A stretch of DNA of 64,000 bases from Klebsormidium nitens. Taxonomy: Eukaryota; Plantae; Klebsormidiophyceae. The notes beneath the pieces were generated by a model, which saw nothing but the letters and a program-made list of their open reading frames with translations, searched no databases and was not told where the DNA came from. The stretch is from positions 62,001 to 126,000 of the forward strand of contig DF237057.1 of the NCBI GenBank assembly GCA_000708835.1, in the 5' to 3' direction. The translations under genes were made by a program, and so were the position numbers. This document shows, piece after piece, positions 418 to 63,055 of this stretch (the stretch's first letter is position 1; every line of letters begins with the position of its first letter).

Positions 418-3003
418 GAAAAGAACTGTAGTTCGCTAATAGATCAGGCAATCATCCCAACGGGATTTGAAGCAGGACCTGGAGAACCCATACAGCGGCC
501 ACAGCGCATGTACCAGGTGGGATGTGATTCCGCTTTAAACTTAATTCGTCCTGAAAGCTACAAGGATACTAGTTTATTTATCAAGTGTTCTTTACTTTGC
601 TTCTCTTGTGCTCTCGTGAGTAGTTTGATGTCTAGTTTCATGCAAGTTTCCGCTGCATCCAATCTGGTGCTTTGAAAAACATACTGAGTATCTTGGAGAT
701 ATCTTTCGTCCGCTTGTGTGAAGTGCAGAGGTTGGATTCTTAGACATCTTCAATGATGTTCCAGTGCTTTGCATTTCAACAGCGCATAGAGATTTCTGCA
801 CTCCAGCTTGGCAAAGTGGCTAGAAAACTCTGCATCAAACTAAGCCTGTAACGCAATTTTGAGATACCAAGCGAATAAAATTGTCATCTCTGAGTAATCA
901 CAAGGAGAAGTTGGATACCATGAAAGCTAACTTCAGATTGCTGATGTCCCAGGGATGGCTGAACCCAAGAAGATCTCCAGCTGGTTAGCAGCAGCGAAGG
1001 CAGCTCCGTCCAAATCGCCGACGCCGTCCCCGCCTAATCACGTCTCCATGGTGAGGGTTTCTCGGCTTCACTAAGCATCTTGCTGTCAATCTTGCTGTCT
1101 ACTTGGTTGATTTGATCCATAAAATGGAAGTGACAATTAAGTCTGCTTGAGTGAAAAGATATTGGACATGCAGAGGTTCTGTGTCTCCCTCGCTTTTCTT
1201 TTCAGCCACAATGGATAAAGCATGTATGGGAGTGCCTGACGACAAAGGTATTGGAGCAAACCAAAACACTCTTCTTAGAATGGCTAGTCAGAAATTTCTC
1301 TTTACTGCTCATGGACTATAGAGAATGGCAGGATGCCCATTCTGTGACTCACTTCTTTTGATAGGCTGTTGCGTTGCTTCCATGCGAATCCCTGCAGCAT
1401 AATGATAACCTAATAACCTAATGTAACCAGGACTCTCTCATCTTCGTCACAGCTTGCGGCTTTGTGCAACACTGAGGTCAGCAAGGACGCCGATGGTTTT
1501 GTGACGGTGGTCCGAGCTAGGAAGTCTCGGTCCCCCCAGAAAGGGAGCGAGCCTCCTCTGCCACAGGGGGACGAGTTCCCTGCTTTGAAGAGTCCCCCAA
1601 AGAGGGGCCAGCCATTAGAAGGGCCTGTAAAGACCAGGAAGGAGGGGAAGAGGAAGGACGGGCATAAGGACAGAGCAGAGAACAAGCGAGAGGAGAAAGA
1701 AGCCGGCAGATTGGGAGAGTCGACTGGCATCATGGAGAAAAATGCTGGTGCAGAGGCACCGGACCTCAACCGAGGGGAGGGGAGCAGGATCAACACTCAG
1801 GAAAGACTCCAGGCCCCGACAGGCCCTCTGGAGAAAGAGCAAATGGGGAGCAATGGAAAGAGCAGAGAAGGGGGTCTCACAAAGGCGATCAGCGAGGCGG
1901 GCAAGTTGAGGGTGCCCCCCTCGCGTGAGGTCACTGCCGAGTTCGACGGCCTCATGACCGAGCTCCTGAGTGGCCTGCGACTACAAACGTCAGGACAGGG
2001 CCTCTCCCCGCCTGTCACGGCAAGCCCACAAACGCAGGGCCCTGTCCAGGCAACCTGCGCGCCCCCCCAGAACAAGGTGGTGCTCTCCCCCCAGGTGCAA
2101 AAGGCCCTTGCAGCGCCCCCTAAAAACGGCCCAGTAAACCTCACTGAGAGGGCGCCCCCCCTGTCACGGAACCTGTTCCCAAACCCCCCATCGGTTACTA
2201 GAACCGCCCCCCAAACCCTGGTTACTGGTCCTCGGCCGCCCACTCCCAAGATCACAAAAGTCAAACCCCCTGAGCCAATTCTCACCCCTGCCAGGGGCCC
2301 GAATCCGAACTCTTCCGAGCAATCTTCCACCCCCCAAACCAGGGAACTGTCGTTCTTCGCAGTCCCTCCAAAGACCCCAAACCCTTACTCTCCCAAGTCC
2401 GTGCTCGACCTTTCCAGCCCCGAGGGATCCCCCATGCCACGTCAGCAGACCCCGGCCAATCAGACGCCGCCAGCTAAGCGCTCGGCGTACCGGCCTGCGA
2501 TGCACGCTGACCCGAAGAAGGTCATTGGGCGGAAGGCCGAGGCCCAGAGCCCCTCGCCGGAGGTGGTGACGTCATCTCCGTTCAGCTACACGCTGTGGGC
2601 CCCTCCGCTGACATCAGCGAGACTCTCCTCGGCGGAGGCAGGTGTCCTGCGAGAGTCTCCCTGCAACGTGGTTAAGGAGGTTAACCCAGCGAAGGGCAGC
2701 CGGTTAGGGGCGTGGTTAGGGAAAGGGTCGTCCGGTTTGCTGGAAACGGAGAGCGAGTTTCACCAGGCCCTGATTCGGGGGGTGTTTACACAGCCTACGC
2801 CTTTCCAGCAGCCCACAGGTGTGCATACGGGGCATGAGGACGACGAGTTGTGTTGCAAGATCTGCTTTGAGAGGGAGAGCAACTCAACGTACCTGTGTGG
2901 GCACACTTTGTGCAACGACTGTGCAGAATACATTCACGTACATAAGAAGATCTGCCCGTTCTGCAGTAAGCCGATAGAAAGTGTGCTTAGAATGTTCACC
3001 TAA
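418..3003 (+). CDS. Pro/Ser-rich low-complexity protein with C-terminal RING-HC (C3HC4) finger, putative E3 ligase; 5' end uncertain
   Basis: Exon 1453-3003 follows the acceptor tcgtcacag and ends CKICFERESNSTYLCGHTLCNDCAEYIHVHKKICPFCSKPIESVLRMFT. Phase-compatible upstream exons: 937-1050 (IADVPGMAEPKK...HVSM|gtgagg; ATG at 955) and possibly 418-516 (ttcag|EKNC...RMYQ|gtggga). Confidence 0.78.
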
Positions 3004-3674: not shown

Positions 3675-6600
3675 TCATTTCTGATCTAGGCTGAGAGCCC
3701 GTTCCAGTTGATTCAATTCGGCTTTTGTTCGCAATGCGCTCTGCAGTTGCCGCACCCGAGAGAGCCACGTGGCAGCGTTCTCGCCGTCCACTGCGACCCA
3801 AGGAACGGCTGCGAATGCCGGCTGCTCCCACCACTCGTGAATGAGCCGCCCCACCCTGCAGATGACGCAACGCTGACGTCAGCTCGCACGGGCGGAAAAG
3901 GTATGCTTCCGGAGCTTTCGACGCTGCTTACGGGACGCTGAAGGATCTCTCCGTAAGGGCCGCGTAACCTATAAAAGCGAACGTCGCGGAACAGCGATAC
4001 AATGATCCTCTCAGATTGTTCCACGTAGAAGTACCAGTGAGCTCTCTTTTAGTGATCGAAACACTCCACGCATCTTCGTCGGAACACGTACGACGGCCGG
4101 CCACCGAACCTCACCTTTCCGAGTCCTCAATCGCAAACCGCGCCTCGTCCACCGCCGCCCGGATCCGCGTCAGCGTCTCTGACGTCATCTCCTCGTCTTG
4201 CGCCGCGGCTGCTGCTGCCACGTCCTCCACCGCGTTCAGAAGCTCCGGCCGCGCGTCGCTCGCTTCGTCCACCGCAAAACGGCCGTCGGAAACGAGCGCG
4301 CTCAAAGTTTCTGCTTCCTGCAGGATTTGTTAAGAAGGGAATTAAGGGAACTGGAGTTGAAAGCGAGCCGAAAGTGGCGTTCAGTGGCGTCTATCATGGC
4401 GTTGTTTCGTCCACAGCAAACGATTATAGGAGCCAAAAGCGCTCAGAATTTTCGCTTCCTGCACTAATCAGAAATAGGATGTTATAGATGATCCTTGTCA
4501 AAGGCGGGCAGAAGTTTGGTATTCGATGGCGTTTATTGTGGCATGTCTGTGTTCTTTCAGAAGCTCCGGCCGGGCGTCGCTCGCTTCGTCCACAGCAAAT
4601 CGGCCGTCAGACACAAGGGCGCTCAGAGTTTCTGCTTCCTGCATCATTCGGAAAAAGATGGATGTTGAGATCCTTTCTGGCGGTTTTGAACCGTTTGATG
4701 AGCTCCAAACGAGCTTCGAGAGACAAAGCGGCCGTCGGAGACAAGCGCGCTCAGAGTTTCCGCTTCCTGCACAGTCAAAGAAAGCAGAATGATATGAAAG
4801 ACGGATTTAAGAGATGCGTCTCAAGTGCGGGCAGCAATCAGGTGGCGTTTCTGTGTTTCTTCATGAGCTCCGGCCGGGCGTCGCTCGCTTCCGAACCGGC
4901 NNNNNNNNNNNNNNNNNNNNNNNNNNNNNNNNNNNNNNNNNNNNNNNNNNNNNNNNNNNNNNNNNNNNNNNNNNNNNNNNNNNNNNNNNNNNNNNNNNNN
5001 NNNNNNNNNNNNNNNNNNNNNNNNNNNNNNNNNNNNNNNNNNNNNNNNNNNNNNNNNNNNNNNNNNNNNNNNNNNNNNNNNNNNNNNNNNNNNNNNNNNN
5101 NNNNNNNNNNNNNNNNNNNNNNNNNNNNNNNNNNNNNNNNNNNNNNNNNNNNNNNNNNNNNNNNNNNNNNNNNNNNNNNNNNNNNNNNNNNNNNNNNNNN
5201 NNNNNNNNNNNNNNNNNNNNNNNNNNNNNNNNNNNNNNNNNNNNNNNNNNNNNNNNNNNNNNNNNNNNNNNNNNNNNNNNNNNNNNNNNNNNNNNNNNNN
5301 NNNNNNNNNNNNNNNNNNNNNNNNNNNNNNNNNNNNNNNNNNNNNNNNNNNNNNNNNNNNNNNNNNNNNNNNNNNNNNNNNNNNNNNNNNNNNNNNNNNN
5401 NNNNNNNNNNNNGGCCATCGGAAATAAGAGCGCTCAACGCTTTGGCTTCCTGCGGGATGTGTAAAGAAGGGATTCATGAAGATTATTGTCACATGCGAAC
5501 CGAAGTGTGGCGTTTTTCATGGCGTTGTTTCATGACCGCCGGCCGGGCTTCGTCCACGGCAAAGCGGCCGACGGAAACAAGCGCGGTCAAGGTTTCGGCT
5601 TCCTGCAAAATCAGAAAAAGACAAAATAGATCTCAATGGAAGGGATTGAAGTGATGCGTGTCAAGTGCGGGCAGGAATTTAGTACCGCTTCTTTGTTGAT
5701 TCATGAGGTCCGGCCAAACGTCCCCCACACGTCGCTCGCTTCGTCCACGGAGAAACGGCCGTCAAAAGAAGCGCGCTCAGAGTTTTCGCTTCCTGCATCA
5801 GTCGAAAAAGGGGAGTTGAAAACCATCCTTGGCAAAGGCGGGCAAGAGTGTCGCATTTAGTGGCGTTTATTGCGGCGTTTCTGTGTTTATTCGTGAGCTC
5901 CAGCCGGCCGTCGCTCGCTTCGTCCACGAAAAACGGCCGTCAGGAACAAGCGCGCTCAAGGTTTCTGCTTCCTGCAAGGAGGGACGACCGAGGGTCGTAA
6001 GCAGCCGTTAGACGAGAGCGCGCACAGGGCCTCTCGTGAATATATCGTCAAGAGTCAAGACTACCTATAAAATGGTTTCAGATAGTTGGCCCGGTTAGCG
6101 GATAGAGACAGCTGTGGGGCGGATAGCAGGCTTTGTAAGGGCTGAATTATTAGTAGACAGGTTCTTAATGTGGAAAAGCACTTGAGACTGGGCGTGAGAG
6201 AAGCCCCCTTTTTCCTCTTACTGGCCTTGCTCAATGAATGCAATGGTGCAAACTTTTCGCCCCAACCCTAATCTACTCGAGTGAGGAAACAGGACTCTAC
6301 TCAGGGGTTTGTACTTTCCAGGTTTAGCTTAAGCTAAAAATAGAATGAATTTCAGTCTGACCTGAAGCTGCTTCGCGACCGCCGAGATCACCCCCGCCAC
6401 CGACGCATACTCCGGGTGACAAAACGCGAGGCCCTGTAAAACGCGCGGCAGCGCCTTGTCCAGAGTGTGCCCAGACTGGCCACCGGCCGCCGCAAGGCCT
6501 CGGGTCCGCATGGGCGACCCTGCTGACGTGGCAGCCGACGATTGGAGGGCCGACTGGTGGTGCCGTGCGGTGCGCGCGCGCTGGAGGGCGGAGAGCGCGG

Positions 6601-9600
6601 CGAAGTTGCCGGACGCGGCTTCCGACAGGGTGCCACGTGTCAAAGCCTCGTGAGCATCTGCAAGGGAACCAAATGGAGCTTAATTGTAGATGTCCGCCGC
6701 ACTGGCACGTCTGAGATCCTAGAACGACGTCGGAAGACCATAACGGAAGACATACGGTGTGAAACTCGTGATTGTGGGAACTGGGTCCTTGGCGCTACGC
6801 CAGATCAACGTTTGCGGCCCTGACTACTAAGCACACTGCAGGACTAAACGACATTTGTTGTCGATGGTCAACTTTTGAAGTCAATGAAGTGTGAGGACCC
6901 ACCCGTTCCGGTCTCCGCATACTGGGGCGGAAGCATCAGTGCGGCGCCGCCACAAACCTTTCCCTCTTGCGAGCCACCATTCCCCCCGCAACACCAGCAA
7001 GAAGCTGAAACGTTTGATGGCGGGCGCCGAATCACATTCAGTTTGACCGAATCCGCTCCGTTGGACTTACCTGTTCCGGTCTCCGCCAGCTGGGGCGGAA
7101 GCGTCCGGTGCGGAGCGGCGACAAACGCCTCCATCTCCCGGGCCACCATGTCCCGGCCGCGCTGAGCGACCTCCCGGAGCGCCCGTCCGAACGGCGCGAC
7201 CGTCCGCAAAGAGAGGGCACGTGCCCTGTCCGAAACGGCCCCCCAGGCTGCCGCCAACTCCTGCGGTCGCGAACAGCGAGCGCGTCATTTGTTGCGGGAA
7301 CTGACGCTTCAGAAGTCTGCCTGCGCTCGTTGCTTGCTCTTCCGGGCGTGTGGTTTTGATACTTGCGACCACATTTTCAAAGATCTTGGGACGTCTTTTA
7401 ATGTCTTTTTTCTTGCGACATTTTGATCTCGAGTATGTAAAGGGGTCGTCCAATTGGTTTACCCTACCGAACAGAAACAGTCGGCCTGTTTGTGATCGGT
7501 CATCTTTTGCCGCCGGCGGGCTGAACGAGGAGAACATCTTCATGATCCTTCAGAGTTCATTTCTTCTCAACAACTAACATCTGAAGCCCCCTGTTTCAAC
7601 TGTCCATTCCCGGCCAATACCCTCCAACCCAAGTGCACAGAGAAACCAGTCGCTTACGTGCACTGCCCCAAGTCCGATACTCTGAAAACCCAACCCCTCA
7701 TCCGGCCAAGGATACATCCGAGACGGCCCAAGCGAGCTGAAGCACAACGAACTGAAGCAATTCAAAAAACCCTGAATGCTCAAACCCCTCACGTCATTTT
7801 CCTTGCACAGGTCATTGTGAAGCGCTTCTAGCGCCGCCCGCCGCGCGTCGAACTCGGTGATCCGCTGCCACTTCCGCCGGAGCAGGAGTTCCGCTCGTTT
7901 CCGCTCCTCCTTCGCTGCAGTCAGCCGCGCAACCTCCGCTTCCAAAACGGCCGTCGCCGCTCTCGCGCCGGCAAGCTCCCGTTCTTGCGCCCAGACTTGA
8001 AGCTGCAAACACTGGGTTCGTTCCGTCATTCTGTGAATTCCGTTCCGTTCAGGCCACTGGAGCATTGAGAGGAAAAAAATGGCTGACAGATTCGAAGTCT
8101 AGCACGGCCGCCGGCCCCCTCGTAGTCAACGACTCCGGTTCCTGGGCCCAGACTCGAAGCTGCAGTTTGGAAGCAGCAAAAGTCCGGTTCCGTTTGTTCC
8201 GTGGGTTCGGTTCCGTTTCGTTAGCTAAGCAGCATTGGAAAACAAAAGCGCGCAATCTTCGCTTCCGAACCAACTGCAGCGGCTTTTGAGCCAGCGAGCT
8301 CTGGTTGTCGGGCCCACACCTGAAGCTGCAGGGGTGCAACTTCCGCTTTCTTAGTTCCGTTCCGTTCCGTCGTTTCTTTCTGCCGGTTGACTGAGGAACT
8401 ACATCACTTCCCACTCGAGCACGGCCTCGAGTTCAGAATTTGAGCACGTACTAGCCCCAAACCTACGGGACCGTTCCGTTCAATACAGTTCCTTACACAC
8501 TGTCTCATTCCTCAAGGACTTGCAACAGTGAAGACTCACGAGGGTGGGTCCCTTCTCACCGGATTCCTTCTTAGATCGTTTCCCGCGTCCCGGTCTTTGC
8601 GCTTGCCCCCACGAGTTGGATCAAATTGTTTCGTTCGATTCGGAAAGCACGAAAACTTCCGAGAAACGAGCAACCCTTTCCCTCCGATCCACCTTCAAAA
8701 TAGTTTCCTGCGTCCCACTCGATCCGCTCGCCTCCAGCACCGCGCATATCACCTTCTCTACGTTCCTTTTGCTTGAGAAAGAAGTAAACCCGCAGAGAAA
8801 AAGCGACTTCTAAGTCCTTCTCATCCGACCCACCTCCAAGATCGTTTCCTGCGTCCCGCTCTTCGCGCTCGCCTCCAGGACTGCGCGCATCGCTTCTTCG
8901 GTTCCTCGTTGACTATCATCTGCCTGCGCGTAGGCCTCTTCCGTACGCATGAACTGTGCGACGTGCGCCTTCTGCCGCTCGCGCAGCAGCGCCAGGGCGG
9001 TGCGCGCGCCGCCGAAGTCGGCGCCGGAGTGGGCGTCTTCCACGATCTTGTTGTTCTCGTACTTGTACCTAGAGGGATAGAGGGAAAATTCAAGGTTGAC
9101 TTCGTTCCTGCATTAGTTGCAAGTGCTGACGGGTTTTCCTAGCACGAGCGTCCTGAACAATCTCATGTTCTCGTATTTGTGCTGAACGGGAGAGCGGCAG
9201 AAGATTGAGCTTTGAGTTGTTTTGGTGAGTTAAGGTATTGCTCAAAGGTATTTCCCCGAGAGTTGAAGCAATCTGAACAGAGGAACAACCGTAACAATGC
9301 AGCCGGTATTGTTGCTCGTCACACTTTCCCGCTGGCCTAGAGGGGCCTTCCAAATTCCACCCACTACAAGAGTCTGGAGAACCTTCCGCAACTTTTACAT
9401 GATCGTCATCCAAGAACCTGACCAACAAGGCAATACACGTCACGTTTAGGAAGCCTGTCGTTCCATTGTGCCCCGGGTAAAAGTTATGCTGCAAAACAAT
9501 TTAGCGATTTGCGTCGTTCTAGCACACAACTACTTCGAAGAACTATCTGTTCAGTTTCAAACGTGCCCTGTCGATGCCGTCCTAAAGGTCGTCCGCACTC

Positions 9601-12171
9601 TCCGCTCACCTTAATCTTTCCGCATCCCCCCGAATGTCGATCCGCTCCGTCTCGCCTTTCAGGGCTTCCGCTGCGGCGCTCGTACAACTCGCAACCGCCC
9701 GTAGCAACTCCTGCGGCGCCCGAAGCAGCTCCGATAGCTTATCCAACATTCCCGGCGGGTAATCCCCCAGCACATCTCGTATGACGCCTCCCAGAAAGAC
9801 CTCACTGCCAAGATACGTCACGGCCCGCTCCGAAACCTCTTCCCGGCCTGTTGCTTGCGCGTCCCGCTCGTCGGCCCCCCAGGGGGATCCCCCTCCGGTG
9901 TCGTCAAACTCACTGTGGCCTTCTTGCCATCCGGGTGACCTCGGCGAAGCGGACCCGAAAGCACCGTCCGTGTCGCGCGTTTGAGCGTCCGAGGTGTTGG
10001 TACGAGCGTCCGAATCGGTCGGATCCAGGTCCGCATCGTCCGAAAGTCGGAGCTCCGGAACGCTCTCCGCGATCCGCTTCTCCAAGAGACCGGCCAAAGC
10101 TTCGCAGGCCTCCCGCACCTGGCGCTCGGTCGCAGTTTCCAAAAGCGGGGCTCCGGACGCCAAGTTCGGGTCCGAACTCGGCTTGCCGGACACTGAAACT
10201 GTGCTATCACTTTGAACCGTGCTCGCATGACCCGCATTTTCAGGCACCCTAGCGCTGACACTGGTTGAGCTCGATCTGGAAGAGGACTGGGTCGGTTTAT
10301 AATCTCCGGGCGTTTCGGATACCTCCGCTCGTTTCACCGTCGAGCTCAGGGCTAACGAATCGCGCACCGCCACCTGGCGCTCAAAGACCTGCTGCGGGGC
10401 CGCCTGTGCGGCGCTCTGTTTGGCGGTCCGAGCGTGGGCGATGTGGACGTCCAAACGCTGCTTGCACGTCCGGAAAAGGGCAACAGCGTCCGACATCTGG
10501 CGCTGGTAGGATTCCAGAGCGACGATCCGAAACTCCTGGTCGCTCCGCTCCATTGCATCCCTGTGAGGCCAGAAGACGTGACGCTTAAGTTCGGATATCG
10601 TTGGATAAGAGCAACCAGGAAGTTTTGAACAGAGTCATTAGGAGAGGGTGAGAGAACCACTTTGACAGGATCAATAAGCCAGTCTTTCAGAAACAGGCAT
10701 CACAGTCAAGCATGCTTCCAGCAACAACAATGTCTAACCTACGAAGCCGCAGATTACAGCTTCCAAGATCGTTTCAGTCACACCTCCAACAGGCTCACGA
10801 TGGGGAAATCTGGTTTGAAAGCAAGCTGTGAAGTATCATCGAGATGCCCCAAGACGATTGTTCAGCAATACTGCCGCCATCGCAAATCCGATGAGGCTTC
10901 TTTATCTGCAACTGTTTGGTTCTGAAAAGGGAGCAGAATCACGTCTCATCAGCAAAGCTTGATCCACTCGGACTCACGAGATTGACTCTGCGTAACTCAC
11001 CTGTCACGCTGCAACTCCTCTCTTGCGCCGTCCTCCATCTGCTGCTCCAACGAGCGTTCCAAATCTGCCACCTGATCTTGCAACCGGGCCACCTGCCCAC
11101 AATTTGAACAGGGCGTCAGACCACTTATGCTACTGAATAACTATGCCCGGCTTGTTGAGTACGCGGCCTTTAGTAATAATATGCAGTCAGGCACACCCCC
11201 GGAGTGATAGTTTTGGACTACACCTGTTGGCACCGGGACTACACTTTTTGGAATGCGCATCCGCTATGTATTTCATTCATCACAAGCCCCATTCTAAAGT
11301 TTAGCACCTTTAAAAGGTTTGGGACTCTTCACCTCTGCTTGGGCTGTGGCCCTTTGTAGAAGCGCCTCTTCTCTGCCGGTCTCCCCGGGTTTGTCTGTCC
11401 ATTGCCCGTCCAGTGTCTCCCCTGTCCAGCCTTCATGCCGCCCTTTCCTGTCCCCCTGGCCATGTACAATCAGGTTTCGCCGAATGTCCCGCACAGTCTT
11501 CTCAGATCGCACCTGCAGATGATTGATCGGGTGAGTTGATATTGACTTCCGAGGGGTTTGTTTGCTTAGTTGGTAAGTTGAAGCACGTTGGTTAGGGCCA
11601 TGTTTCGGCTCCCACTGTGTAAACTTCAGAGACTTCTTCTTCTGGAAAAATGGTAGGGCAATGTTGGTCAATTCCTGCCACATTGCAACACGATCTGAGC
11701 TCGGACGCCTGATAAGGATCATACTTGCAAGGCAAAGGAGACCAAACGTTTTAGGAACCATTATGCAAGACCTCTGCTCTTTTGGAGCAGCTGTTCAGAG
11801 CAAGCACTGAAGAATTACGAAGACGAATCACGATCTCAGATTGCGAGGAGTAAATCAGCTTCCCGGATGCTTCATGTCAACAAAGTTGTTCCGGCTGGTA
11901 AAATCCAGTGGCCACAATTGGATTTGTGGACACCAGCAAGAGATTGAACGACGAGGACAACAGAGTTTATGCGAGACAATGGAGCATAGCTTCTCACCCG
12001 TTCTACAAGAAACTTCCACACGGGAGCCAGGTTGCCCCGACATATCTTCCGGAACGAATCGGCATCCAGCGGAAAGTCGTCGGCGGTCCGATCCGGAGGA
12101 CGATACTCCATCTCCCCAGTCACCCACTCTAGTATACTCTCCGGGTGTGGGTGAGCAGCAGAAGCTGCCAT
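3675..12171 (-). CDS. AUG5: AUGMIN subunit 5 (HAUS5 family), about 10 exons
   Basis: Exons approx. 12171-11998, 11512-11334, 11092-11001, 10560-9610, 9070-8833, 8004-7793, 7260-7073, 6657-6362, 4317-4115, 3855-3675. All have GT-AG boundaries and the phases checked were consistent. Peptides match plant AUG5 as recalled: [89 protein letters not shown]. Confidence 0.93.
4240..5975 (-). repeat. Tandem array of degenerate copies of an AUG5 acceptor plus exon start (at least 8 besides the real exon; period about 130-190 bp), interrupted by a gap
   Basis: Recurrent tgcag|GAAGC(A/G/C)...AGCGCG...GACGGCCG...GGACGAAGCGAGCGACG starting near 4317 (functional copy), 4457, 4638, 4766, 5449, 5602, 5792 and 5971, plus a partial copy at about 4866-4900. 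Confidence 0.9.
4901..5412. other. Assembly gap (N run) within the AUG5 intronic repeat array
   Basis: Run of N flanked on both sides by repeat units. Confidence 0.99.
8090..8775 (-). repeat. Degenerate copies of AUG5 exon boundaries in one intron: two acceptor/exon-start copies and two exon-end copies
   Basis: ctgcag|CTTC(A/G)(G/A)GT(G/C)TGGGCCC near 8330 and 8165 mimic the real exon start at 8004 (LQVWAQE). ggaggcgagcg...gggacgcaggaaac at about 8690-8770 and 8555-8610 mimic the exon end at 8833. Confidence 0.8.
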
Positions 12172-12457
12172 TTTGCTTCTCTTTGGGGTGCCAACAAAAA
12201 GTCCAAACCGACTTCGCGCCGATGTTGCGCTCCTCAATTGGTTTGCGAGCGCACTGTCTGATCTTACCACCAGGTCTCGGCAGACACTTGAAAGTGAGCT
12301 CGCATATGAATGGGGCTTTCCCAAGCCTCAACCTTTTTGTTCGACTCTCAATGTCAGCTCAGAGTTGCGGCATTGGCATTTGCACGCATTTGTTGACCCA
12401 TTCAACTTGAATTTGAATTTCAACTTCAAGGCGTGCACACTAGTGGCAGCAGGTGCC

Positions 12458-12744
12458 GTAGTCCAACGTGACGATTCCGAATAAATAAATAATTATCTGC
12501 GTTCGGAAAGTCAGAGATTCAGATTTCCCATTCGGAAAGTGAAAATTTCGGAAAGGTAAAATAACCCTGAAATGGTCCTCGGAAGCCGTAAAACTGCCAA
12601 AAGCAGCCAAAAACTCCCCTTTTGAGTGAGACCATAGGGCATTCGGATTTTGGTCGGAATCAGCATAAATAATTCCACTTTCCTGGTCGGATTGTTGGAA
12701 AATAATTCGAAATAAAATCGTTCGGAATCATCACGTTGGACTAC
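12458..12744. mobile_element. MITE-like element, about 285 bp, with 24-bp terminal inverted repeats
   Basis: gtagtccaacgtgacgattccgaa (12458-12481) pairs with ttcggaatcatcacgttggactac (12721-12744) with one mismatch. The interior is AT-rich and non-coding with recurring ttcggaa. TA at 12459-60 and 12742-43 could be a Tc1/mariner-type target-site duplication (TSD). Confidence 0.55.
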
Positions 12745-13186
12745 AGGATTTTGAAGGACTTGGCGCCAACAGTATCCTACGTCAACTTCATACCCTAAAG
12801 CTTGAAAATCAGAAACCCTAAATGGACTACCGGTAGGTATCATGGAAGCTCAAGTGGGTACGGTCGAATGTCACGTGTCATGGATCATAACTTATAAGAC
12901 CAAATTCCGTACTTGACGGAGTTGGTCGAGCTGTGCCCGCAGTAAATGCATGTCTGCCACCTGGGCGCGGCGGATCGTGTTGACCACTCATCATCCAGTC
13001 AGACCAGGAACCGGGTGTTCGTGTCGGTACAGTACCTGACGGTACCTTTCGGGGGACGGAAGTTTTACATGATCCAAAAAGAGAAACAGCAGGATTCATC
13101 GAGGCCGTCGGCACCGTATTCAACGATCAGGATGGCTGTCACCGGTTGCCAAATCCAACCACAAATCCTTGGGGCCGCCGAAACGT

Positions 13187-13240
13187 GCCACGTTGGCAGC
13201 GGCCAAAAGTGCTAAAAGAGTTTGAGGCTGCCAACGTGGC
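13187..13240. promoter_or_regulatory. Perfect 14-bp inverted repeat with a 26-nt spacer; each arm carries an ACGT core (arm 2 reads CCAACGTGGC, ABRE/G-box-like)
   Basis: gccacgttggcagc (13187-13200) is the reverse complement of gctgccaacgtggc (13227-13240). It lies in the region between the divergent AUG5 and GATA genes. Confidence 0.45.
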
Positions 13241-16200
13241 GGGGAAGATCCGTTTGAAGTGGTCTGCAAATTGCGCGCGGCGGCATCTTTCAAGTTTCTA
13301 ATTCGCCTTCCCCCTTTTGAAAACGCAGGAGTGACTTTCTAGAATCCCGCATCCCCGGAGTGCTCGAGGCAGCAAAGTGACTTGGACTTGGTACTGTGCG
13401 TGTGTACGTGCACCTAGCACAAGCAGTCTGAATGTACCTACAATGCCTTTGGAAATGCGCGCGCGCAGGTACAAAATGAAGCATTTACCTACGGTATGAT
13501 GCAAGCGGCTGGGGCGAACCCCTCCCTCGGACCTCCTCCAAAATTTTAAGTCGTGACTCATGAGGCAGAACTTCGCAGAAGGTCAGCGGAGTTGGAAGAG
13601 GAAGCGCAACAGCTCTATGGTGCAATCCATAAAAGTTGTGCAACAGCAAATAGCCCGCCAAGGAGGTCTTGACGATGTTGCCTAGCATAGGGTTGACAGG
13701 TGCTATGCATTGAGTTGCTCAGAGCTTAATTGCTCAGATATTGAGTGGGGTGGTGATCGCCTCCAGCTGAAACGCTGGTGGTTGTGGGCCTGGGGACTTG
13801 GTGGCGGGGCCTAGGAGCATTGAGTTGAGATGAAAGGCAGCGTGCTCTCGGCAGCCGGGCAAAGCATGCTCAGCGATGAGGAATTTGCAGGTAGGGCGCT
13901 TCCCTATCGCTCAGTGTGTTTCTCAACGTTGTTTACAGGATGAAGCCTACCACTACACTTCGTTTCACATTCACTTGTTGCAACTCTTAATAGTGGCCCT
14001 TAGACCCTGCTGATTGGTTAATGGACTCATTGCTTTGAGCTTGCCTGTGATGACCGTCACTTCAGGTGGCATTGATTCCATGGAAAATAGTGCAAGGGCT
14101 ACCATGTGACCTTATTGCATTGGGCCTCCCTCATCAATCTGCTCACTCATATTATTCATCAGTACTTTTTTTTTTTTTTTTTTTTACTAACTCCTTCCTT
14201 TCCACATTCGATTATGATGCCAGCAGTGCCCCTTCGCCCCAACACATTTGGAGTCTTTGTTGCATGGCAGATGAGGTTTGTCGAGCAAATCTCTGGAAAG
14301 TGTGTGGTTCAGCAGCATCAAGGGCTCCGTATTGATGGCCTCCTCAGTATGAAAGCTTTTTTTGATTTCATAGCCCTAAATCAGAGAAAGGAAGGCCCTA
14401 CACGATCAGGAGTGGAGCCTAGGTAGGAGGAAGTGCCCCTTAGCAGAGACCTCTCCTAATACTTCCCAGCAACATCTAGAAGTGGTGGTTCTTACCCTCG
14501 TAGGCACGTGGCATCGCCACAACAAATCAAAGAAGAACCGTGCGACTCTGTGTATTGTTCTGATTGCATCATCCAATCTAATGGCAAGGCGCTTTGTCAA
14601 ATGCTGGTGTCATTGCCCTCTTTGCACCTTACATCATGCAGTTTGGCAGGCTAGCGGGTAAGCTGCGAGTGAGGTGTGCGCCTTGGTCTAGTTTGATTCC
14701 TAGTGGTCAGCGAATCTTAATACCCCACCTGAAAGTGGTTGTGTCATTCCTTGTAAGCTGCATTGCTCTCTCAAAGCAGATGGTGGGGCAGGGCTGTGTT
14801 TCTGTTAGGCTTGATCAGAGAATTTTGGTTAAGGATTTGGTTCGGATGATGCCCTGCAGCTGAGATGTCTCAAACGTAGCGAGGTACTTGCATTGGGGGT
14901 TAGGGGCACGCAGACTCTTTGGGTTGACCATGTCTGGAGGGGATGACCACTTCTCATCGCACTCTGTGCTAAGGTTGCCCTGCTCATGTTTTTAGATGTG
15001 TTTGGCTGAGCTTCAGTACTCAAACATTTGAAGCTGACAAGGGGGGGGGAAGACTTTTGGTGACGCTCAATGTTTTCCAGATTAGTGCCCTGCATTGACT
15101 GGTGTGGAATGGGGTCAGAGGCTAGCAACAGGATACAGTCTCTGACTGCATGACAGCCTTAGCGCTCAAATTTCTGCCTATGCCTTCAGACTTCCAAGGT
15201 TCAGTTAAATTGTACCAGAGTCAAAGCGCGAATCTCAGCTGAGTGCAACGCAATGTCACCACTTAAACATGCCCTCTCCAGTCTCAAGCTGACTGTTGCT
15301 CCCACAACAAACCTTGTGAAGGCGTCACTGGGCTTCCATCTCAGATTTCATCTGCATTCAAATTGTCTCTACTGTAGCTACGCATGTGTCAGACTCCAAG
15401 GATAGCGAGTCCCTTTGCTTTAGCATTTTTGAGCTGTCTTCTTGAGATACTTCCGCCCTTTGACTAGCATTGGGCGCTCAATGAACGCTTTCGAAAACAG
15501 ACTGCATTTGCCTTTTTACTAAACCCCGCTGGCACCTTCAGAGTGGGCTAAGCTTGTGACTCTCAGCACGTCACTGGAGCGGGTCTGTCAACCACGTAAT
15601 CACCCCACTTTCCACCTCACACCTGCTGAACACTTCTCCTCTGTCGTGAGGCTGGAAAACTTATCCTCGCTTTGTCCCAAACCCTCTCAACATTGATATT
15701 AAGTGTCTAACGGAGGGGATGCTGAAGTTCTGACGGCATTCCTGACCTTTAGGGTCTAGTCAGCTGCAACTTCCTCTTGCTTTGTGTTGGCATGCTTTCG
15801 TTCCACCTTGCTTGTAAGGTTGTTGCTGGACGGATGTCATTCAGGTCGTTCTCAGCTGCCATCTGTCCACCCTACCTTCCAACACCTCTTAGCAAAACAC
15901 AAAGTCTCAGCATTGCTTAGTGGTGATGTGTCGGAGGCTTTGGTTACATTCTTATGGCGCGTCATATCCTTGTTGTGGATATTCCCTTTTTGCCCGGTTT
16001 CCAAACTCTTCACTGCCACTGTTCATTAAAGACTCACCTTCAGCTCAACAGTAAATCCATTTCTTGTGACGCCACCATTTTCCTCCATGCAGCATTTCAT
16101 TACACTGATTTTTGAAGTCTCTCTGCTTGAATTCCAAGTCCGCACGTGTTGCTGATCATCCTAACGTGTTGCTGACCATTTCAGACTCCATTGAATACTC

Positions 16201-16419
16201 TTCATCTCCCAAGTCTTTTGAAAGTCTTTGCTTTCACTGACGAGAAGCTCACTGAAAGCCTTAGCTTTGAGTAAGGGCGGCCCCCTTACTCATATCCATA
16301 TGCTTTCCTTCTCTTTCAAGTTTTCATGCTTTTCTTTGTTTAATTCTCTGTTTCCTCCCACTTTTTTCTCCGGATCCACCTTACTTGTGATATGAACATC
16401 ATAATCACGTCATTCCCCT

Positions 16420-16650
16420 TCGCCAATTCCCTCCTGCTCATTGCTCAGCTGCCCCTCAGCAAGGGCGGCGACCTCTTTAAATCTCTAGAATCCCCAGATT
16501 CTTTTCTGTACTCGATCGACAAAAACTCACCCCCCCAGTTCTTACTATGATATGTATTCTCCTGTAATTCGTTCCTTCTTCCTGCAGACTCCCTCCTGCT
16601 CATCACCGAGCGGCCCCTCTGCAAGGGCGACGATTTCCCCTTGCTTCTGC
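16420..16650 (+). repeat. Two degenerate upstream copies of the GATA-exon start
   Basis: ttccctcctgctcattgctcagctgcccctcagcaagggcggcgacctct (about 16427) and cag|actccctcctgctcatcaccgagcggcccctctgcaagggcgacga (about 16588) match the real cag|attccctccttcttatcactcagcggcccctttgcaagggcgacgacctct at 16825. Confidence 0.8.
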
Positions 16651-16824
16651 TTTTAAAAGTTGCAGAAGCCCCAGGATTCTTCCCTTGTTTTCAGGCACCA
16701 GCAGCCCCCAGTTATGACCGTGATCTTAATAGTTTCTTCTCCTTACCAACAAGCACCAACATCGAGATTCGAATCCCTTGCTGTCACGTGCAAAAGTGAA
16801 GGTTTACCGGCTTTTCCCGCGCAG

Positions 16825-19800
16825 ATTCCCTCCTTCTTATCACTCAGCGGCCCCTTTGCAAGGGCGACGACCTCTCCAAGCAGCGGTGCGGTGTGTGCGG
16901 GACAACCAACACGCCCTGCTGGCGTAAGGGGCCCGCCGGCCCAAAAACGCTGTGCAATCGCTGCGGGGTACATTGGTACCAGAACAAGGACCGCTGGGAT
17001 CTGATTGTGGAGGAGCTGCGAGCAACTAGAATGGACGACACCGTCGAGCAGGCGAGCGCGCCGACGCGGACGGTCATCAAGAAGAAGGTGAGGGGGTGTG
17101 CTCTTGATGATGGACTTGTTTGGAAGTACAAACCAGTTGTGAAGCGGAGCGGTGTTTACTTTTCCATGGTGGTTTATTTCAACTGCTTGAAAGCCTCAAG
17201 GACTCATTTCATTGACTTTGCGGTCTAGATGTTATGTGATCAGCTACAGGCCATTTTGCGTGCTTGATGAACAATAGACTCATTGTTCAGCAGCTTGCTT
17301 AGAAGGCATTGCATGCAACATATGCGACACGAGTACAAAGCAAACACTTCGAAGCAATGCTGGCTATGTTGCTGCATCTTCTGGGCTCTTTTCTTTCTAT
17401 GGTGCTTCTCTTTTCTTTGGCCCCCCAGCTTGACTGCAATATTGCAAATAAGGTCGTCAACCATGAGGAAAGATGAGCGGGCAGGGACGAAGACTGGAAC
17501 CAGGATTGAAGCCAGTTTTATACCCTCTCTGACGTTCTCTACTTTCTTCCCCATCCCTGCAAGTCATAAGCAGGCAGCTAAACCAAAAATACAACTGAAG
17601 AAGGACGGAAATAGAAGAAGAAGCGCTGTTTTTCTGTTCTATCTTGAAAATCTTTACACTTCTCTCCAGGTCGACCCCCGCAGCGCGGAGGCCCACCCCG
17701 CCGTCCCCGACTCCCAGCGCTGCGTCAAGTCCAACGGGCGCGGCTGGCGCTGCAGTCAGCGCAAGGTCTCCGGCTACAGCTACTGCGCGCACCACCAACG
17801 CAACTGGGACGGCCACGAGAAGCAGTGGCGCAAGGCCTTCCCGAACCTGGTCTACCCGCGCAAGTCCAAGAAGGCGGCGGTTGTTGCGGACGGGGGCGTC
17901 GCGGTCCAGAAAGACGGGACCGTCCGGAAACGGGAGCGGAAGCCGAAGCACCCCGGAGGGGGGGTTGCACTGCCCGAAAAGTGGGGGCGGAGCTCGAACG
18001 TGCACCGGACGCAATTCGGACGCGACTCGGACGGCAGCTCCGAGCCGGACTACGTTGACTCGCGGCTCGGGAAGGTCCGGGCGAAGTCGTACGGGGTCCG
18101 GAGTCCGAGAGGCCCTGCGAAGGAGGGGAGCGGCTCCATGATGCACTTGGTGCTGCCCTCGGAGACGGACGAGCTCGGCGGAATGAGGCCTACGTACATG
18201 TCGGACGATGACGACAGCCAGCTGTATCACGGGACACAGCTGTCGGAGGAACCGGGGGAGTCGTCGGAGAGTGCGAAGGAGGTCAGGAGTCCCAACCAGA
18301 ACCGGGCAGGTGAGGAGACGGGGGTTGGTTTAGGGCAGTAAAGAAGTTGCTGTCGGAGATTGGTCTCGTTTTATACCTCAGATCAGAGGAGGAGTCGGGA
18401 TTCTTACAACGCGCATGTCTGTCTTCGTGATCGGATCCGAGGGCAAAAAGGTTCTCGACACTGTCTTTGCAGATCTTTCAAACATCTGTGTTCCACTCTC
18501 GGAAACTTGGTTGAGACGTCCTTGTTGTCAGAGTGCATAGGGCCGATCTTATTGTCACTCTTGTCGCAAATCTGTGTCTTGTCCCTGCCATTCGAGCTTT
18601 TTCCCCATGTCTTGGGTGTGATTCGACGGCCTTTCTGAGTCCTTCCAAGGATCACGAGAAACTTCATTGCGCCAATGGTAGCATACACTGCAGCCCTTCC
18701 TTTTTGTTTCAAACAGATCCCAATGCCTTCCTTCTGGCGAAGGTCCGCCTTCAGTTTTTTTCAACACTAACGAGAGCTTCTTTAACTGAGCATCTCCTTA
18801 CTTTGCAGATCTTCAGCCCAAGCAAGAGCCATCTATCCGCTCTGAGGTCACCACCCTCTCCCCCCCCCTCAAGGCCAGCCATCCCGAACCCCCTACCGAG
18901 AACCAGCGGTGCGTTATGAAGGGAGGCACCGGTTGGCAGTGCCCACGCCCCCGGCAAAGTGGCCTTCGCCACTGCCAATATCACACCGAAGCGCGGCGCG
19001 CAAAAGCGGCGTTGCAAAACGGGTTAGTGGGTAAACAAAACGGGTCAGGCGCGGGCGATGACGATACGCTGAGCAGCATGGAAATCCTGATGCGGCTGCA
19101 GCTGAAGAGGAAGCGCTCCGAAGAGGAGAACGAGACCCGGCGGGACGGGTTAGCGGGGTCCGGGTTAGGCCTAACCTGGAAAACGAAGATGCGGCGACGG
19201 CCGTTCAGCAGCCGGGGGGGCCCCGTGGCGGACGTGAAACAGGGGTCGGATCTGAGCCAGGACAGCCCCCGGCCGAAGAGGGAGATCGACCCCCCCGAAA
19301 CGGAGTGGGGGGGTCGTCGCGAGGAGGAGGACGACGCGGCGTATCTAGGCGTGGAGGAATTGCGGAGGCGCCTGGAGCAAAGCCGGGGGGCGGTCGCGGC
19401 GCAGCAGGAGAGGAACGAGGCCGCTGGCCGAGAGCTTATGAAGGCCAGGGAGGGGCGGCTTATGGCGGAAAAGCGGTTGGAGGAGGCGAGAAGGGAGGCG
19501 GAGGGGGGGGAGGATGCGGCCGCAGTTGAGAAGCTGAGGAAGGCGGTGCAGGCGGAGCGGGCGGTTGGCTGCGCGCTGCAACCGGAGGTGAGCGTCGATC
19601 CTTAATGTTACCGTTTCGTTCTTGTGCTGTAATTGTTTGGGAGTTATTTCAGGTTTTCGTACGTTGTTCATCAGCGAAGGTGGGAGATGTGTTTCACAGG
19701 TTACACCCGCGAGGCCAGGGCTACCTGCCGATTGACCATGCCCCTTTTCTCGTCCATTTTTTTACTACTTCTGCAATCCACCCCGCCCGATATCTGTTTG

Positions 19801-21030
19801 ATCTGTACCTCTTGCTAGAGGATGCTGTGCGTTTTGTACACCCTCAGGCCAGAGGACCACTTTCGAGACTCTACACCAGGCAACATGCCACTCTTATTCA
19901 AGGAATCGAACGAATCACACTCGCTGACAAGGCTCGTCGTCGTTCAATTTCGCAGGCCCTCAAACTTGCGGACCAGTTCCAGCACCAGGCGCTACTGCTG
20001 GCGAAGCAGGACGCCCATCTGACCGACCTCCGGACGTCCGCAGAGGAGCTCCGTGGGGAGGTGGCGGTGCTCACGGCTGAGAAGAAGGAGCTGCAAGTGA
20101 GAAACTCTCGCATCTAGTTGTCAATCACGAAGGCAATGTGACGGTTGGAAAATCCTCGGGGGCTGGAAGTGGAGTGGCTTCAAGGAGCTGCGTCTGAAGA
20201 GTTTTTCATTCGCCCGTAATCCTTGTGTGCAACAGCAACGATTTTGGCTTGGGGCTCGAAACCAGGCCTTAGCGATTGTTTTTAAAAGCCCAAATAAGTA
20301 CTAGATCAGTTTTTCTGGATGGAAGAGCGGGCTGAACGGTTCAACGCACTCCTGCCTTTGTCGATGTCGAGGAGCTAATCAATAGAGACGTCTCTATGAA
20401 GGTTTCTGAGACTGCGCTGCTGCTCTGAGTTGTTCGAGGACAGGGGAATTGAGAGGTCGGAAAGGAGCTCAGCTGCTCTCAGAAGGTCACGGATACCAGG
20501 TCGTTAGTACATCAGAGCTCCTAACAATACCGCCAGTCCCAGGTCAAACAAAAGAATGGGTCCGCTGCCGTTCTCGCTACTCTAGTTCTGACGTACGTCT
20601 GTCATCATTGCAGGCCCAGCTGGCACTGCTCCAGAAGGCGAACGCGTGCACCCTGTGCGTCTCTGGCAAGCCCGCCAGCGCCGCGCTCATGCCATGCGGC
20701 CACTTGTACTGTGGCACATGCACCGCCGAGTTGCTCCCACGAGCGAACGGCGTTTCCGCACGCAACTTGACCCCGGCCATGGATGCTCCCAAGACCGAGG
20801 GGCCGTCGGATGTTGTATCGGCAACGACCACCGAGACTGGTGTTAAGGTTATTGTAGAAAGCGAGGGACAGGTGGTAGAAAATGAGGGATTGGTGAGAAC
20901 GTCTAGGTGTCCCTGCTGCTCGGTCGAGGTGCAGGGACGGCTAGTCGTTCAGAAGCCGGCGCCGGTGGACGAGGAGATGGACGGCGCCGTTAGCTTGCTG
21001 GGGCTGCTCACTAGTGAGAGCTCCCAATGA
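16825..21030 (+). CDS. GATA zinc finger - WRC - WRC - coiled coil - RING-HC protein; true start further upstream (possibly the ATG at 13830)
   Basis: Phase-consistent exons 16825-17087, 17670-18309, 18809-19587, 19956-20096, 20614-21030. GATA: [27 protein letters not shown] (C-x2-C-x18-C-x2-C). WRC1: [29 protein letters not shown]2: [26 protein letters not shown] (both C-x9-C-x10-C-x2-H). RING: CTLC...[10 protein letters not shown]...CPCC. Confidence 0.85.
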
Positions 21031-22515
21031 AAAATCCACATTGCGATTGGGCCCGGCTCTGCCTGTCAGCGGGCTGCGGCACAAGCGTTGTAAATATACC
21101 ATGCGTTTGAGTTAGGGCCTATGTACACGACCTGGAGCGCGTTTACACTAGTTGTAATTTGTGGGGGGTGGTTTAGGGGTGGGTTTAAGATAGTCGCTGG
21201 CGTACTGCGAGAAGCCACGTGGGTCAGGGACGCGTGAGGAACGCGTCGCCACTCCTCTAGTCAGAGGCGTGCGGTCGCGGTTCCGAGTCTCGATGACTGA
21301 GGTGACTGTGTTTGGAACCAATCTGGGGTAGTGTACTGTTTGTGGACAATAGAAGCGGATGGCTAAGCAACGCTCTAAGCTGAAATGCTACAGCTAAGAG
21401 CTAAAACACTTGTTTTGGTGTAGGTGTTCTTGTTCCTCTTCGCCTCTCGTTTGTGGAAAAGCAAAGTGTAGATGTAGCTTCTTGTCATGTTCACTAGAAA
21501 TGTTCAAGCAGACAAGTGATTAAATGGCAGCCATTTTTCGTAGGTGGGCAATTATGAGCCCTGATTTTATGGACAAATCCTGGAATTAGGGCAACTTTGA
21601 GATTCAAGAAATTGAGGCTTTCTTGGCTGATCATTCAATCAACTCAATCTTTCATGGAGTTCTTTTGGCCGTAATTATAGGTCACATGCGAGGGTTATTG
21701 GTATCGTGATTCTGCGGCCGGCATGGTGGGAATGTCGGACGAGGGTTTGCCTGTATGTGTACTTTTTCCGCGATCATCATATGCAATCAGCTTCATGAAT
21801 TGAGGGGATTTTTGCACTGGCTGCAAGACTCACATGTGTGCACGGTGGTTAAATAATACTTTAATCCGATCAATCTTGCATTTATTGGAATATTTTGCTG
21901 CCGACATGTTGAATGGTCATGATATTAGTATGCAGCCGCCCGGCGGAAAGAGACCATATGTCGATGATATCGCGTTAATTCGCGAGTCACTATATATTAC
22001 GATACAGCACAAGTGACTGGCATGCGCCATGCAAAGGCCGCCATTATGCATGCACAAATGATTGCAATCGCGTCCCAAACTAGATGTGCGCTTGATCGTC
22101 TAGGCGGCGATGCATGATATATAGACTGAGCATAGATCTTCAACTTGCATATGAAACGGAGAATTGAATGAATTTTAATATGTATATTTTGCAATGATAC
22201 TATCTAAGCATAGTGCATGATATTAGATCATGCAATCATATACCTTCGATCATCCCATTACGACACAATGAAGGGCACGCCTGTGTACATGCAAACATCG
22301 TTTTGATAATGATGAGCCACATGCACAGTCATACATGTGACGGTAAGGTTTGCGTGAAACCAGCGTAATTGTTGTCAAAGAGATTCATAATGACCGTATG
22401 CGAATCATTCGGTAGTCATGTCATGGCCTGGTGCCAGACACATGGTCACGCACGCAGGATCCGTCAGCTTATATCTAAACCTTTCCATTCCGTTGATTAG
22501 TTACTCGTTCGAAAT

Positions 22516-61990: not shown

Positions 61991-63055
61991 ATTCTGAAGG
62001 AGACGTACCCGACGCTCGAGATTGTGCTCACTGTGTTGTGCATTTTAGGACCGCTGTTTCTAGTGTTACTTATTTTGTGGTGTACAGCAGCCTGCTTCCT
62101 TGGATGCAATGACGAAGGGTTGTTCGGGTAATAATGCTCGTCAGGACTTGATATGCCCGCGTCCTCGGCCAGGCTTCATCCATTTAAATGCCAGAGTTTT
62201 AAGATGATCTTATTTTCATGCAAGCCAATTGTTCAAACAAAATGCACAACGACGGATTCAATGATTGCAGTCGAATGATTGCAGTCGAAGCGAAGCTGAC
62301 TACTTTGAAAGTCTGATCTTCCGGGCCCGTGCTTAAACGCTGATGACAATCTCTTGGGAAACGTCGCGGACGGTTATAAAATCTTCAAACAAGGACGCAG
62401 AACTTTGAGAAAAGCTTCTATAATTGAAGAAATTCAGGTAGGTTGCTTAATCTACCTGTGGATGCAGCTAGAGCTATATGGCATATATGCCCATGGTTGA
62501 GTTTCCGAGTATGGTTAATGAGCATGGAGACTTCCGAGCGCATGGTTGATCGCTTCTTATCATCGGAATATCTCGATGAGTGCACCAATGATGGCATTAT
62601 GAGCACCATGCCATGGGCATTGAATCCGTTATAATCAATGATTATAGCGTGGCACCCTCAACTTATACATGAATGAGAAACAGCGCATGTGCAAGTCTTT
62701 GACTCAGTCGGTCACTGATACGGCTCGCTACGTCCTGAATGGCCGGCCCGTTGCATGGCGAGTCTAGTCGAAACGACTCGACCTAAGACATAATACTGTG
62801 ATTGAGCTGCAAATCAATCATGCTTGGATCTGGTGCCGCCGTGGGTAACCGTGTTTGGTTGAAAACGACATTTAAAGCTCAAGTGAGATGGCTCCACAAT
62901 CCAACCTAGATGCATGCATGGCACTTGCTAGACTTATAAGACCGATAGATATGTCAATCGAGAACCCACTTCTTAATATGCTTTGAGCAGTAGTCTCCAA
63001 AAATCAACTTTGTTTAGGGTACAACATCTAGGACGAATCAAGTCTTGGACTGTCG

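Follow-up and report, generated by a model that had tools for sequence, protein, structure and literature searches.

Here we describe a gene of the alga Klebsormidium nitens (Klebsormidiophyceae) that is predicted to join a GATA zinc finger, two WRC fingers and a RING domain in one protein. It lies within a stretch of 64,000 nucleotides (nt; hereafter the window), which corresponds to positions 62,001 to 126,000 of the forward strand of contig DF237057.1 (NCBI GenBank assembly GCA_000708835.1) and whose first letter is position 1 in all window coordinates given below. The gene occupies positions 13830-21030 of the forward strand and consists of six exons (E0-E5), whose joined coding sequence (CDS) of 2301 nt specifies 766 amino acids (aa) and a stop. 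The predicted protein is composed of a short N-terminal peptide, the GATA finger, WRC fingers 1 and 2 (WRC1 and WRC2, with acidic and Ser-rich linkers and a KRKR patch), a long helix, the RING and a C-terminal tail. Judging from the sequence, we consider it reasonably probable that this is one nuclear gene, whose 766-residue product is a RING-type ubiquitin ligase (E3 ligase) addressed to DNA. The gene represents a new combination of known domains, which is conserved, under selection and apparently undescribed.

The gene was compared with its orthologue in a JGI metagenome contig (L001). This contig carries the protein fragment P0001 (62% identical to the exon 2 query), which a word search with exon 2 returned along with P0002. 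In L001 the gene had been divided by a prokaryotic gene caller into pieces containing a GATA finger, no domain, a WRC finger and a RING, respectively, and these have the same order and strand as in the window. Comparison of window positions 12001-22000 with L001 (blastn) revealed conserved islands (68-85% nt identity) coinciding with E0-E5. The conservation drops exactly at each donor, resumes at each acceptor and ends at the stop codon of E5. In the introns nothing is conserved, except for one short element: the 3' end of E1, together with its donor, is repeated in intron 1 of L001 (L001 positions 9009-9059). All 10 splice sites of the L001 gene are GT-AG and occupy homologous positions. Its CDS is 2262 nt long, its exon lengths modulo 3 are the same as in the window, and the differences in exon length between the two species (6, 12, 36 and 15 nt) are all multiples of 3. 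Every exon is under purifying selection (Table 1); the pooled comparison gave a pN of 0.165 versus a pS of 0.499, and no stop codon interrupts the frame in either species. The gene neighbourhood is also shared, since HAUS5 (encoding augmin subunit 5) lies head-to-head upstream of the gene in L001 and is equally placed in the window (7070-11761, reverse strand). Between the two genes, within window positions 12947-13251, there are two short intergenic blocks conserved in L001, which may represent a shared bidirectional promoter or a 5' untranslated region (5' UTR).

A preliminary description of this DNA, made from the sequence alone, had proposed a gene beginning at position 16825 and comprising five exons with canonical borders, joined in one frame. 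Reading of the sequence and translation of each exon confirmed these five exons (E1-E5; Table 1); the frame of E2 is that of the open reading frame (ORF) 17283-18341, and all splice junctions in the window are GT-AG and join the exons in frame. The proposed beginning had to be revised: because E1 is entered in phase 1 and contains no ATG ahead of the GATA finger (only 9 codons are open 5' of its acceptor), the gene does not start at 16825. The ATG is supplied by a sixth exon, E0, which was recognised as a conserved island (79% nt identity with L001 positions 5480-5540) and which is left in exactly the phase required by E1. In both species an in-frame stop is located 2-3 codons 5' of this ATG, and both split codons of the gene encode Asp in the window as well as in L001.

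Table 1. Features of the GATA-WRC-WRC-RING gene in the window, with exon-wise comparison to the L001 orthologue. Pfam was run on each exon separately, with cut-offs of 26.8 (GATA), 28.6 (WRC) and 27 (zf-C3HC4_3) bits.
Feature	Position	Strand	Description	aa identity to L001	dN/dS to L001
Exon E0	13830-13890	+	ATG, 20 codons and 1 base, then GT donor; leaves in phase 1	75%	0.13
Extra copies of E1 start	16422-16478 and 16584-16640	+	Found by repeat search in intron 0; 57-nt unit of acceptor plus first 53 nt of E1
Exon E1	16825-17087	+	AG/GT borders; phase 1 in, phase 0 out; contains GATA finger	87%	0.08
GATA finger	16887-16979	+	Pfam PF00320, 47 bits, E 1.9e-12
Exon E2	17670-18309	+	Phase 0 in, phase 1 out; WRC1 and conserved acidic, Ser-rich linker	70%	0.30
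WRC finger 1	17706-17798	+	Pfam PF08879, 36.1 bits, E 5.2e-9
Exon E3	18809-19587	+	Phase 1 in, phase 0 out; WRC2, KRKR patch, 30-residue block, long helix	72%	0.24
WRC finger 2	18898-19005	+	Pfam, 21.6 bits, E 1.8e-4; below cut-off in the window
Exon E4	19956-20096	+	Phase 0/0; 47 helix-prone residues with heptad pattern, directly ahead of RING	83%	0.19
Exon E5 (last)	20614-21030	+	Phase 0; RING, C-terminal tail, stop TGA at 21028-21030	65%	0.24
RING	20647-20919	+	Pfam zf-C3HC4_3, 29.8 bits, E 5.3e-7
C-terminal tail	20965-21024	+	Acidic-hydrophobic, 20 residues; 19 of 20 positions invariant in four lineages

Further homologues were found with other parts of the gene. Searches with exon 3 yielded P0055 (93% identity; Logan contig of 3264 bp) and P0056 (67% identity; JGI contig of 147,717 bp), and those with exon 5 yielded P0057, P0058 and P0059, the last of which is probably located on the same 3264-bp contig as P0055. 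The exon 3 and exon 5 homologues are ORFs of genomic DNA, whose frames run on past the exon borders into the introns. Taken together, at least four related lineages are represented, and at every ligand position covered by a homologue the zinc ligand is conserved.

The GATA finger scores almost equally in the window (Table 1) and in L001 (47.8 bits). Its ligand spacing, CX2CX18CX2C, is that of the plant and fungal fingers with an 18-residue loop, and Arabidopsis GATA18 (chain 8j48_D, E 7.9e-13) is its nearest relative of solved structure. Both WRC fingers have the spacing CX9CX10CX2H. WRC2 does not reach the Pfam cut-off in the window, where its signature reads W-Q-C; it exceeds the cut-off in the orthologues (32.2 bits in L001 and 31.9 bits in P0056), in which the signature is W-R-C, and all four of its ligands are conserved in the homologues. 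The two fingers are only 34-40% identical to each other and at most 51% identical to any WRC finger among the database matches. The nearest WRC fingers belong to small WRC-only or multi-WRC proteins of land plants and to JmjC-linked proteins, and not to growth-regulating factors (GRFs) or other QLQ proteins. A sequence search of the PDB returned no solved structure matching the WRC exon. The plant type of the GATA finger and the presence of WRC domains agree with a streptophyte source of the DNA.

In the RING all eight C3HC4 ligands are present, in the order CX2CX12CXHX2CX2C, followed by 62 residues and a final CX2C. The last loop of classical RING domains comprises 4-48 residues. Thus, the exact ligand spacing that had been attributed to all four zinc modules holds for the GATA finger, WRC1 and WRC2, while the RING, with its last loop of 62 aa, is not fully canonical. 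The insert between ligand pairs 3 and 4 (20722-20907; 68 residues in L001) is partly conserved among the homologues. All four E5 homologues have kept the last ligand pair and the tail, and the three that are full-length also have the first six ligands; P0059 begins inside the insert and therefore covers only the last pair and the tail. The best solved sequence relatives of E5 are the C-terminal RINGs of IAP proteins (4auq_B, E 9.5e-4, and 6hpr_A), and the match takes in the helix preceding the RING. The segment following the last ligand pair may resemble the IAP C-terminal tail as well. In the ESM Atlas, E5 resembled RING clusters only, with scores below 0.9.

The regions linking the zinc modules are also conserved. 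E2 contains acidic and Ser-rich motifs shared with L001. In exon E3, WRC2 is followed by the basic KRKR patch (19105-19116), which is similar to nuclear localisation signals, and by a 30-residue block (19162-19251), 29 positions of which are invariant in a four-way alignment of four lineages. A long helix then extends over positions 19315-19575: AlphaFold2 predicted helices at residues 169-231 and 236-255 of this exon with a pLDDT of 82-94, and these helices are the only confident part of the model; WRC2 was modelled without confidence. No look-alike of exon E3 was found in the ESM Atlas. Altogether, the RING is preceded by long helix over approximately 140 residues, the last part of which is a heptad (coiled-coil-like) segment. 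As to the coiled coil mentioned in the preliminary description, a significant heptad pattern was seen only in E4, where the a/d positions of the heptads are occupied by hydrophobic residues at a frequency of 0.79, compared with 0.61 in shuffled sequences (p ~0.01).

We infer DNA binding and ubiquitin ligation by this protein from its domains, which suggest the following course of events. The protein would enter the nucleus, where the GATA and WRC fingers would bring it to particular DNA sites. It may pair through the helix and the RING, by analogy with IAP-type RINGs and with the Arabidopsis protein JMJ24. The RING would then recruit a ubiquitin-conjugating enzyme, leading to the ubiquitination of the protein itself or of nearby chromatin or transcription proteins. 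In its most specific form, which we put forward tentatively as one possibility, the protein would be a lineage-specific "address plus ligase", in which three sequence-specific fingers from two plant families (GATA and WRC) deliver a dimeric RING E3 ligase to defined genomic sites, with histones or co-bound regulators as its substrates there. If this is true, a single polypeptide would link a DNA motif to ubiquitination in its vicinity, which has not been described for GATA or WRC proteins.

Several observations weigh against the assignment of this gene to a DNA-addressed ubiquitin ligase. An alignment with GATA18, GATA3 and GATA1 revealed a Cys at the Leu/Gln position of the plant T-P-x-W-R motif, and the finger is followed by H-W-Y-Q-N-K-D instead of the usual Lys/Arg-rich basic tail. 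Because of this Cys, and since a basic tail is missing directly after the finger, DNA binding by the GATA finger is not assured. The RING contains an insert of 62-68 residues, its Pfam match is confined to the first half (profile positions 2-33 of 49), and AlphaFold2, given a two-sequence alignment, yielded an unusable model of E5 (mean pLDDT 34); an intact RING cross-brace is therefore unproven. The part of the proposed coiled coil residing in exon E3 is a long predicted helix with no significant heptad pattern, i.e. it does not keep a single heptad register (p ~0.2). Finally, neither cDNA nor a spliced protein of the GATA-WRC-WRC-RING gene was found in the databases searched, and for this reason the single transcript is one that we infer. 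The same lack of transcript evidence for the joined exons would fit two adjacent genes wrongly merged, in which case E0-E1 would form a small GATA gene and E2-E5 a WRC-WRC-RING gene. Such a split would also be in line with an in-frame ATG at 17313 in the window (intron 1, 5' of E2) and with the frame that remains open beyond E1 into intron 1 (46 codons in the window and 20 in L001). However, this ATG is missing from L001, where only 14 codons are open before E2, intron 1 contains no conserved candidate 5' exon, conservation halts at the E1 donor and restarts at the E2 acceptor, and this donor, this acceptor and the 0/0 phase are all conserved. A split would require an independent start for E2 or E3, and no conserved one was found in the comparison of the window with L001; ahead of exon E3 the situation is the reverse of that in intron 1, with an intronic ATG in L001 and only 7 open codons and no ATG in the window, while the first Met inside exon E3 falls within WRC2. 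We therefore regard two merged genes as very improbable. The location of the four zinc modules in one gene, as originally suggested, is upheld by the conserved islands, by the conserved splice sites and phases, by the dN/dS values and by the failure of either species to keep the internal starts of the other; this is very probably one selected gene, and a single transcript from all six exons is highly likely. A decaying or non-functional gene, or motifs arranged by chance, might be suspected, as the databases yielded no annotated or spliced protein. This possibility, to which we assign a negligible probability, is already contradicted by the selection data: there are no stops, all insertions and deletions are multiples of 3, dN/dS is 0.08-0.30 at a pS of approximately 0.5, and the ligands are conserved in four lineages.

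The main rival explanation concerns the function of the RING. The protein could be a transcription factor whose RING serves in interaction only, the insert having converted the RING into a zinc-binding module for interaction or dimerisation, with the tail acting as an activation or partner-binding motif. The loop exceeding the classical range, the Pfam match limited to the first half of the domain and the failure of AlphaFold2 to fold E5 can all be explained in this way, as can the invariance of the tail in four lineages and the conserved acidic linkers of E2. We nevertheless consider a non-ligase RING unlikely, as each of the eight ligands is retained wherever a homologue covers it, and as the IAP-like helix before the RING and the segment after the last ligand pair, which may resemble the IAP tail, are conserved too; moreover, the partial conservation of the insert suggests a structured addition rather than decay. 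It is also conceivable that the zinc fingers bind RNA or proteins instead of DNA, in which case the protein would be a RING E3 ligase with substrate-recognition fingers. The unusual residues at DNA-contact positions of the GATA finger and its weak basic tail, the W-Q-C form of WRC2, below the Pfam cut-off in the window, and the WRC exon having no solved relative by sequence are compatible with this explanation. It appears improbable in view of the very close similarity of the GATA core to the DNA-binding GATA18 (E 7.9e-13) and of the description of WRC as the DNA-binding domain of GRFs (PMC6507847; PMC7380329).

The DNA-addressed ubiquitin ligase proposed here shares features with several known groups of proteins. 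None of the exons encodes a QLQ, JmjC, zf-4CXXC_R1, CCT, TIFY, ASXH, HAN or LLM domain (Pfam searches, with QLQ sought at E values up to 1). The finger with CX2CX18CX2C spacing relates the protein to plant GATA factors (class B, HAN/GATA18, 8j48). It differs from them in the Cys within T-P-x-W-R, in the absence of the basic tail and in its fusion to WRC and RING, and, because the companion domains are missing, it fits none of the plant GATA classes described so far. Neither WRC nor RING is mentioned in a survey of 5,335 plant GATA factors, 10 of them from Klebsormidium flaccidum (PMC11608367). GRFs, which are defined by QLQ plus WRC (Fonini et al. 2020, PMC7380329; PMC6507847), have the same CX9CX10CX2H finger; the protein is not a GRF, since it has no QLQ. 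A bearing on the origin of GRF-type WRC domains, which had been anticipated, is not supported: besides the missing QLQ, which is also not among the families listed in the Pfam tally of the 49 further exon-2 matches described below, the nearest WRC fingers are of non-QLQ type and the family was seen only in a few close genomes.

JMJ24, a KDM3-type protein of Arabidopsis with a JmjC domain at the end of its chain, is the nearest functional analogue, as it combines a RING with a coiled coil in one chromatin-associated chain. It also carries a WRC finger. Deng et al. (2016, PMC4743055) showed E3 ligase activity of the JMJ24 RING and dimerisation of the protein by way of its coiled coil; the term WRC does not occur in that text. 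The Klebsormidium protein contains neither JmjC nor zf-4CXXC_R1 and has instead a GATA finger and two WRC fingers, while its RING is C-terminal, IAP-like and interrupted by a long insert. As there is no JmjC and the gene ends at the conserved E5 stop, it is not a KDM3/JMJ24 protein. With the RINGs of IAP proteins (ML-IAP/BIRC7, 4auq; cIAP1, 6hpr; XIAP) it shares the preceding helix and the pattern C-x2-C...P-C-G-H-L...C-x2-C; it differs from them in the 62-68 extra residues between ligand pairs 3 and 4, in the 28 residues that follow the core and in having no BIR domains.

It had been suggested that the GATA-WRC-WRC-RING architecture was not previously known, and our searches agree with this within their range. 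When 1.84 billion representative proteins were searched exhaustively with exon 2 (HMMER), there was one match below 1e-30 (the fragment P0001) and 49 others. No full-length model of the gene was hit, although this search applied no filter on length and would be expected to find such a model if the library included one. Of the 49 further matches, 47 fit the Pfam WRC model and three carry JmjC; one has a GATA finger and one a RING, none has both, and the complete architecture is absent from all of them. Our literature searches turned up no account of a GATA-WRC-RING protein. In a collection of metagenome contigs, alignments of exons 2 and 3 gave pattern matches and no confirmed relative; this collection seems not to include the contigs of P0001 and P0056. 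So far, the family appears limited to a few closely related genomes, i.e. Klebsormidium and metagenome or read-archive contigs that are 60-93% identical.

According to Kim (2019, PMC6507847), the WRC domain is found in 26 Pfam architectures among streptophytes and Mamiellophyceae, and there is a single GRF in Klebsormidium. Among our matches, P0036 (Logan, 1489 aa) contains several GATA-like fingers and one WRC. P0038/P0054, from Coleochaete scutata (EukProt; P0038 is EP00245_P000993), carries its RING at the N-terminus, followed by TRAF/Sina fingers, a coiled coil and, at the C-terminus, two WRC fingers. This protein resembles the one described here as a streptophyte-algal combination of RING, coiled coil and two WRC fingers; however, the order is reversed, TRAF/Sina fingers are present, GATA is not, and there is no similarity beyond the WRC fingers. 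Streptophyte algae seem to have shuffled WRC freely. Three other matches (P0025, P0031 and P0053, on Logan and JGI contigs of 10.8, 21 and 58 kb) share only a 21-residue motif located after WRC1 and diverge just before it. To judge from these sequences, they may derive from a diverged paralogue with an intron inside WRC1.

Some other features of the window should be mentioned. The two additional copies of the beginning of E1 in intron 0 (74% and 84% identity between copies) have no counterpart in L001 and are probably dead local duplicates. The second of them has kept its CAG acceptor, followed by a frame open for approximately 70 codons to near position 16797, and could act as a decoy 3' splice site giving a truncated product. 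At the left end of the window, a Pro-rich open frame of 513 codons (1462-3003, forward strand) ends in a canonical zf-C3HC4_3 RING (E 1.8e-8) and probably forms the terminal exon of a different RING E3 ligase gene; it was considered as a relative of E5 and rejected, since the two are unrelated in sequence. The bin of low G+C content and the ORFs in all six frames at 4902-5412 are not features of the genome, as they result from a run of N in an assembly gap. The bins at approximately 47.4-48.3 kb display the same signs and probably represent another gap.

GATA and WRC proteins play a central part in regulating plant growth, and much of the regulatory toolkit of land plants took shape in streptophyte algae. 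A conserved protein linking GATA and WRC fingers to a RING would show that DNA-binding modules were recombined with the ubiquitin machinery in early streptophytes. The reach of this finding is limited, because the architecture looks lineage-restricted. To our knowledge, JMJ24 is the only WRC-RING protein for which E3 ligase activity has been shown, and the protein encoded by the gene described in this study would extend the short list of WRC-RING proteins and would provide a simple model of ubiquitination directed to DNA sites.

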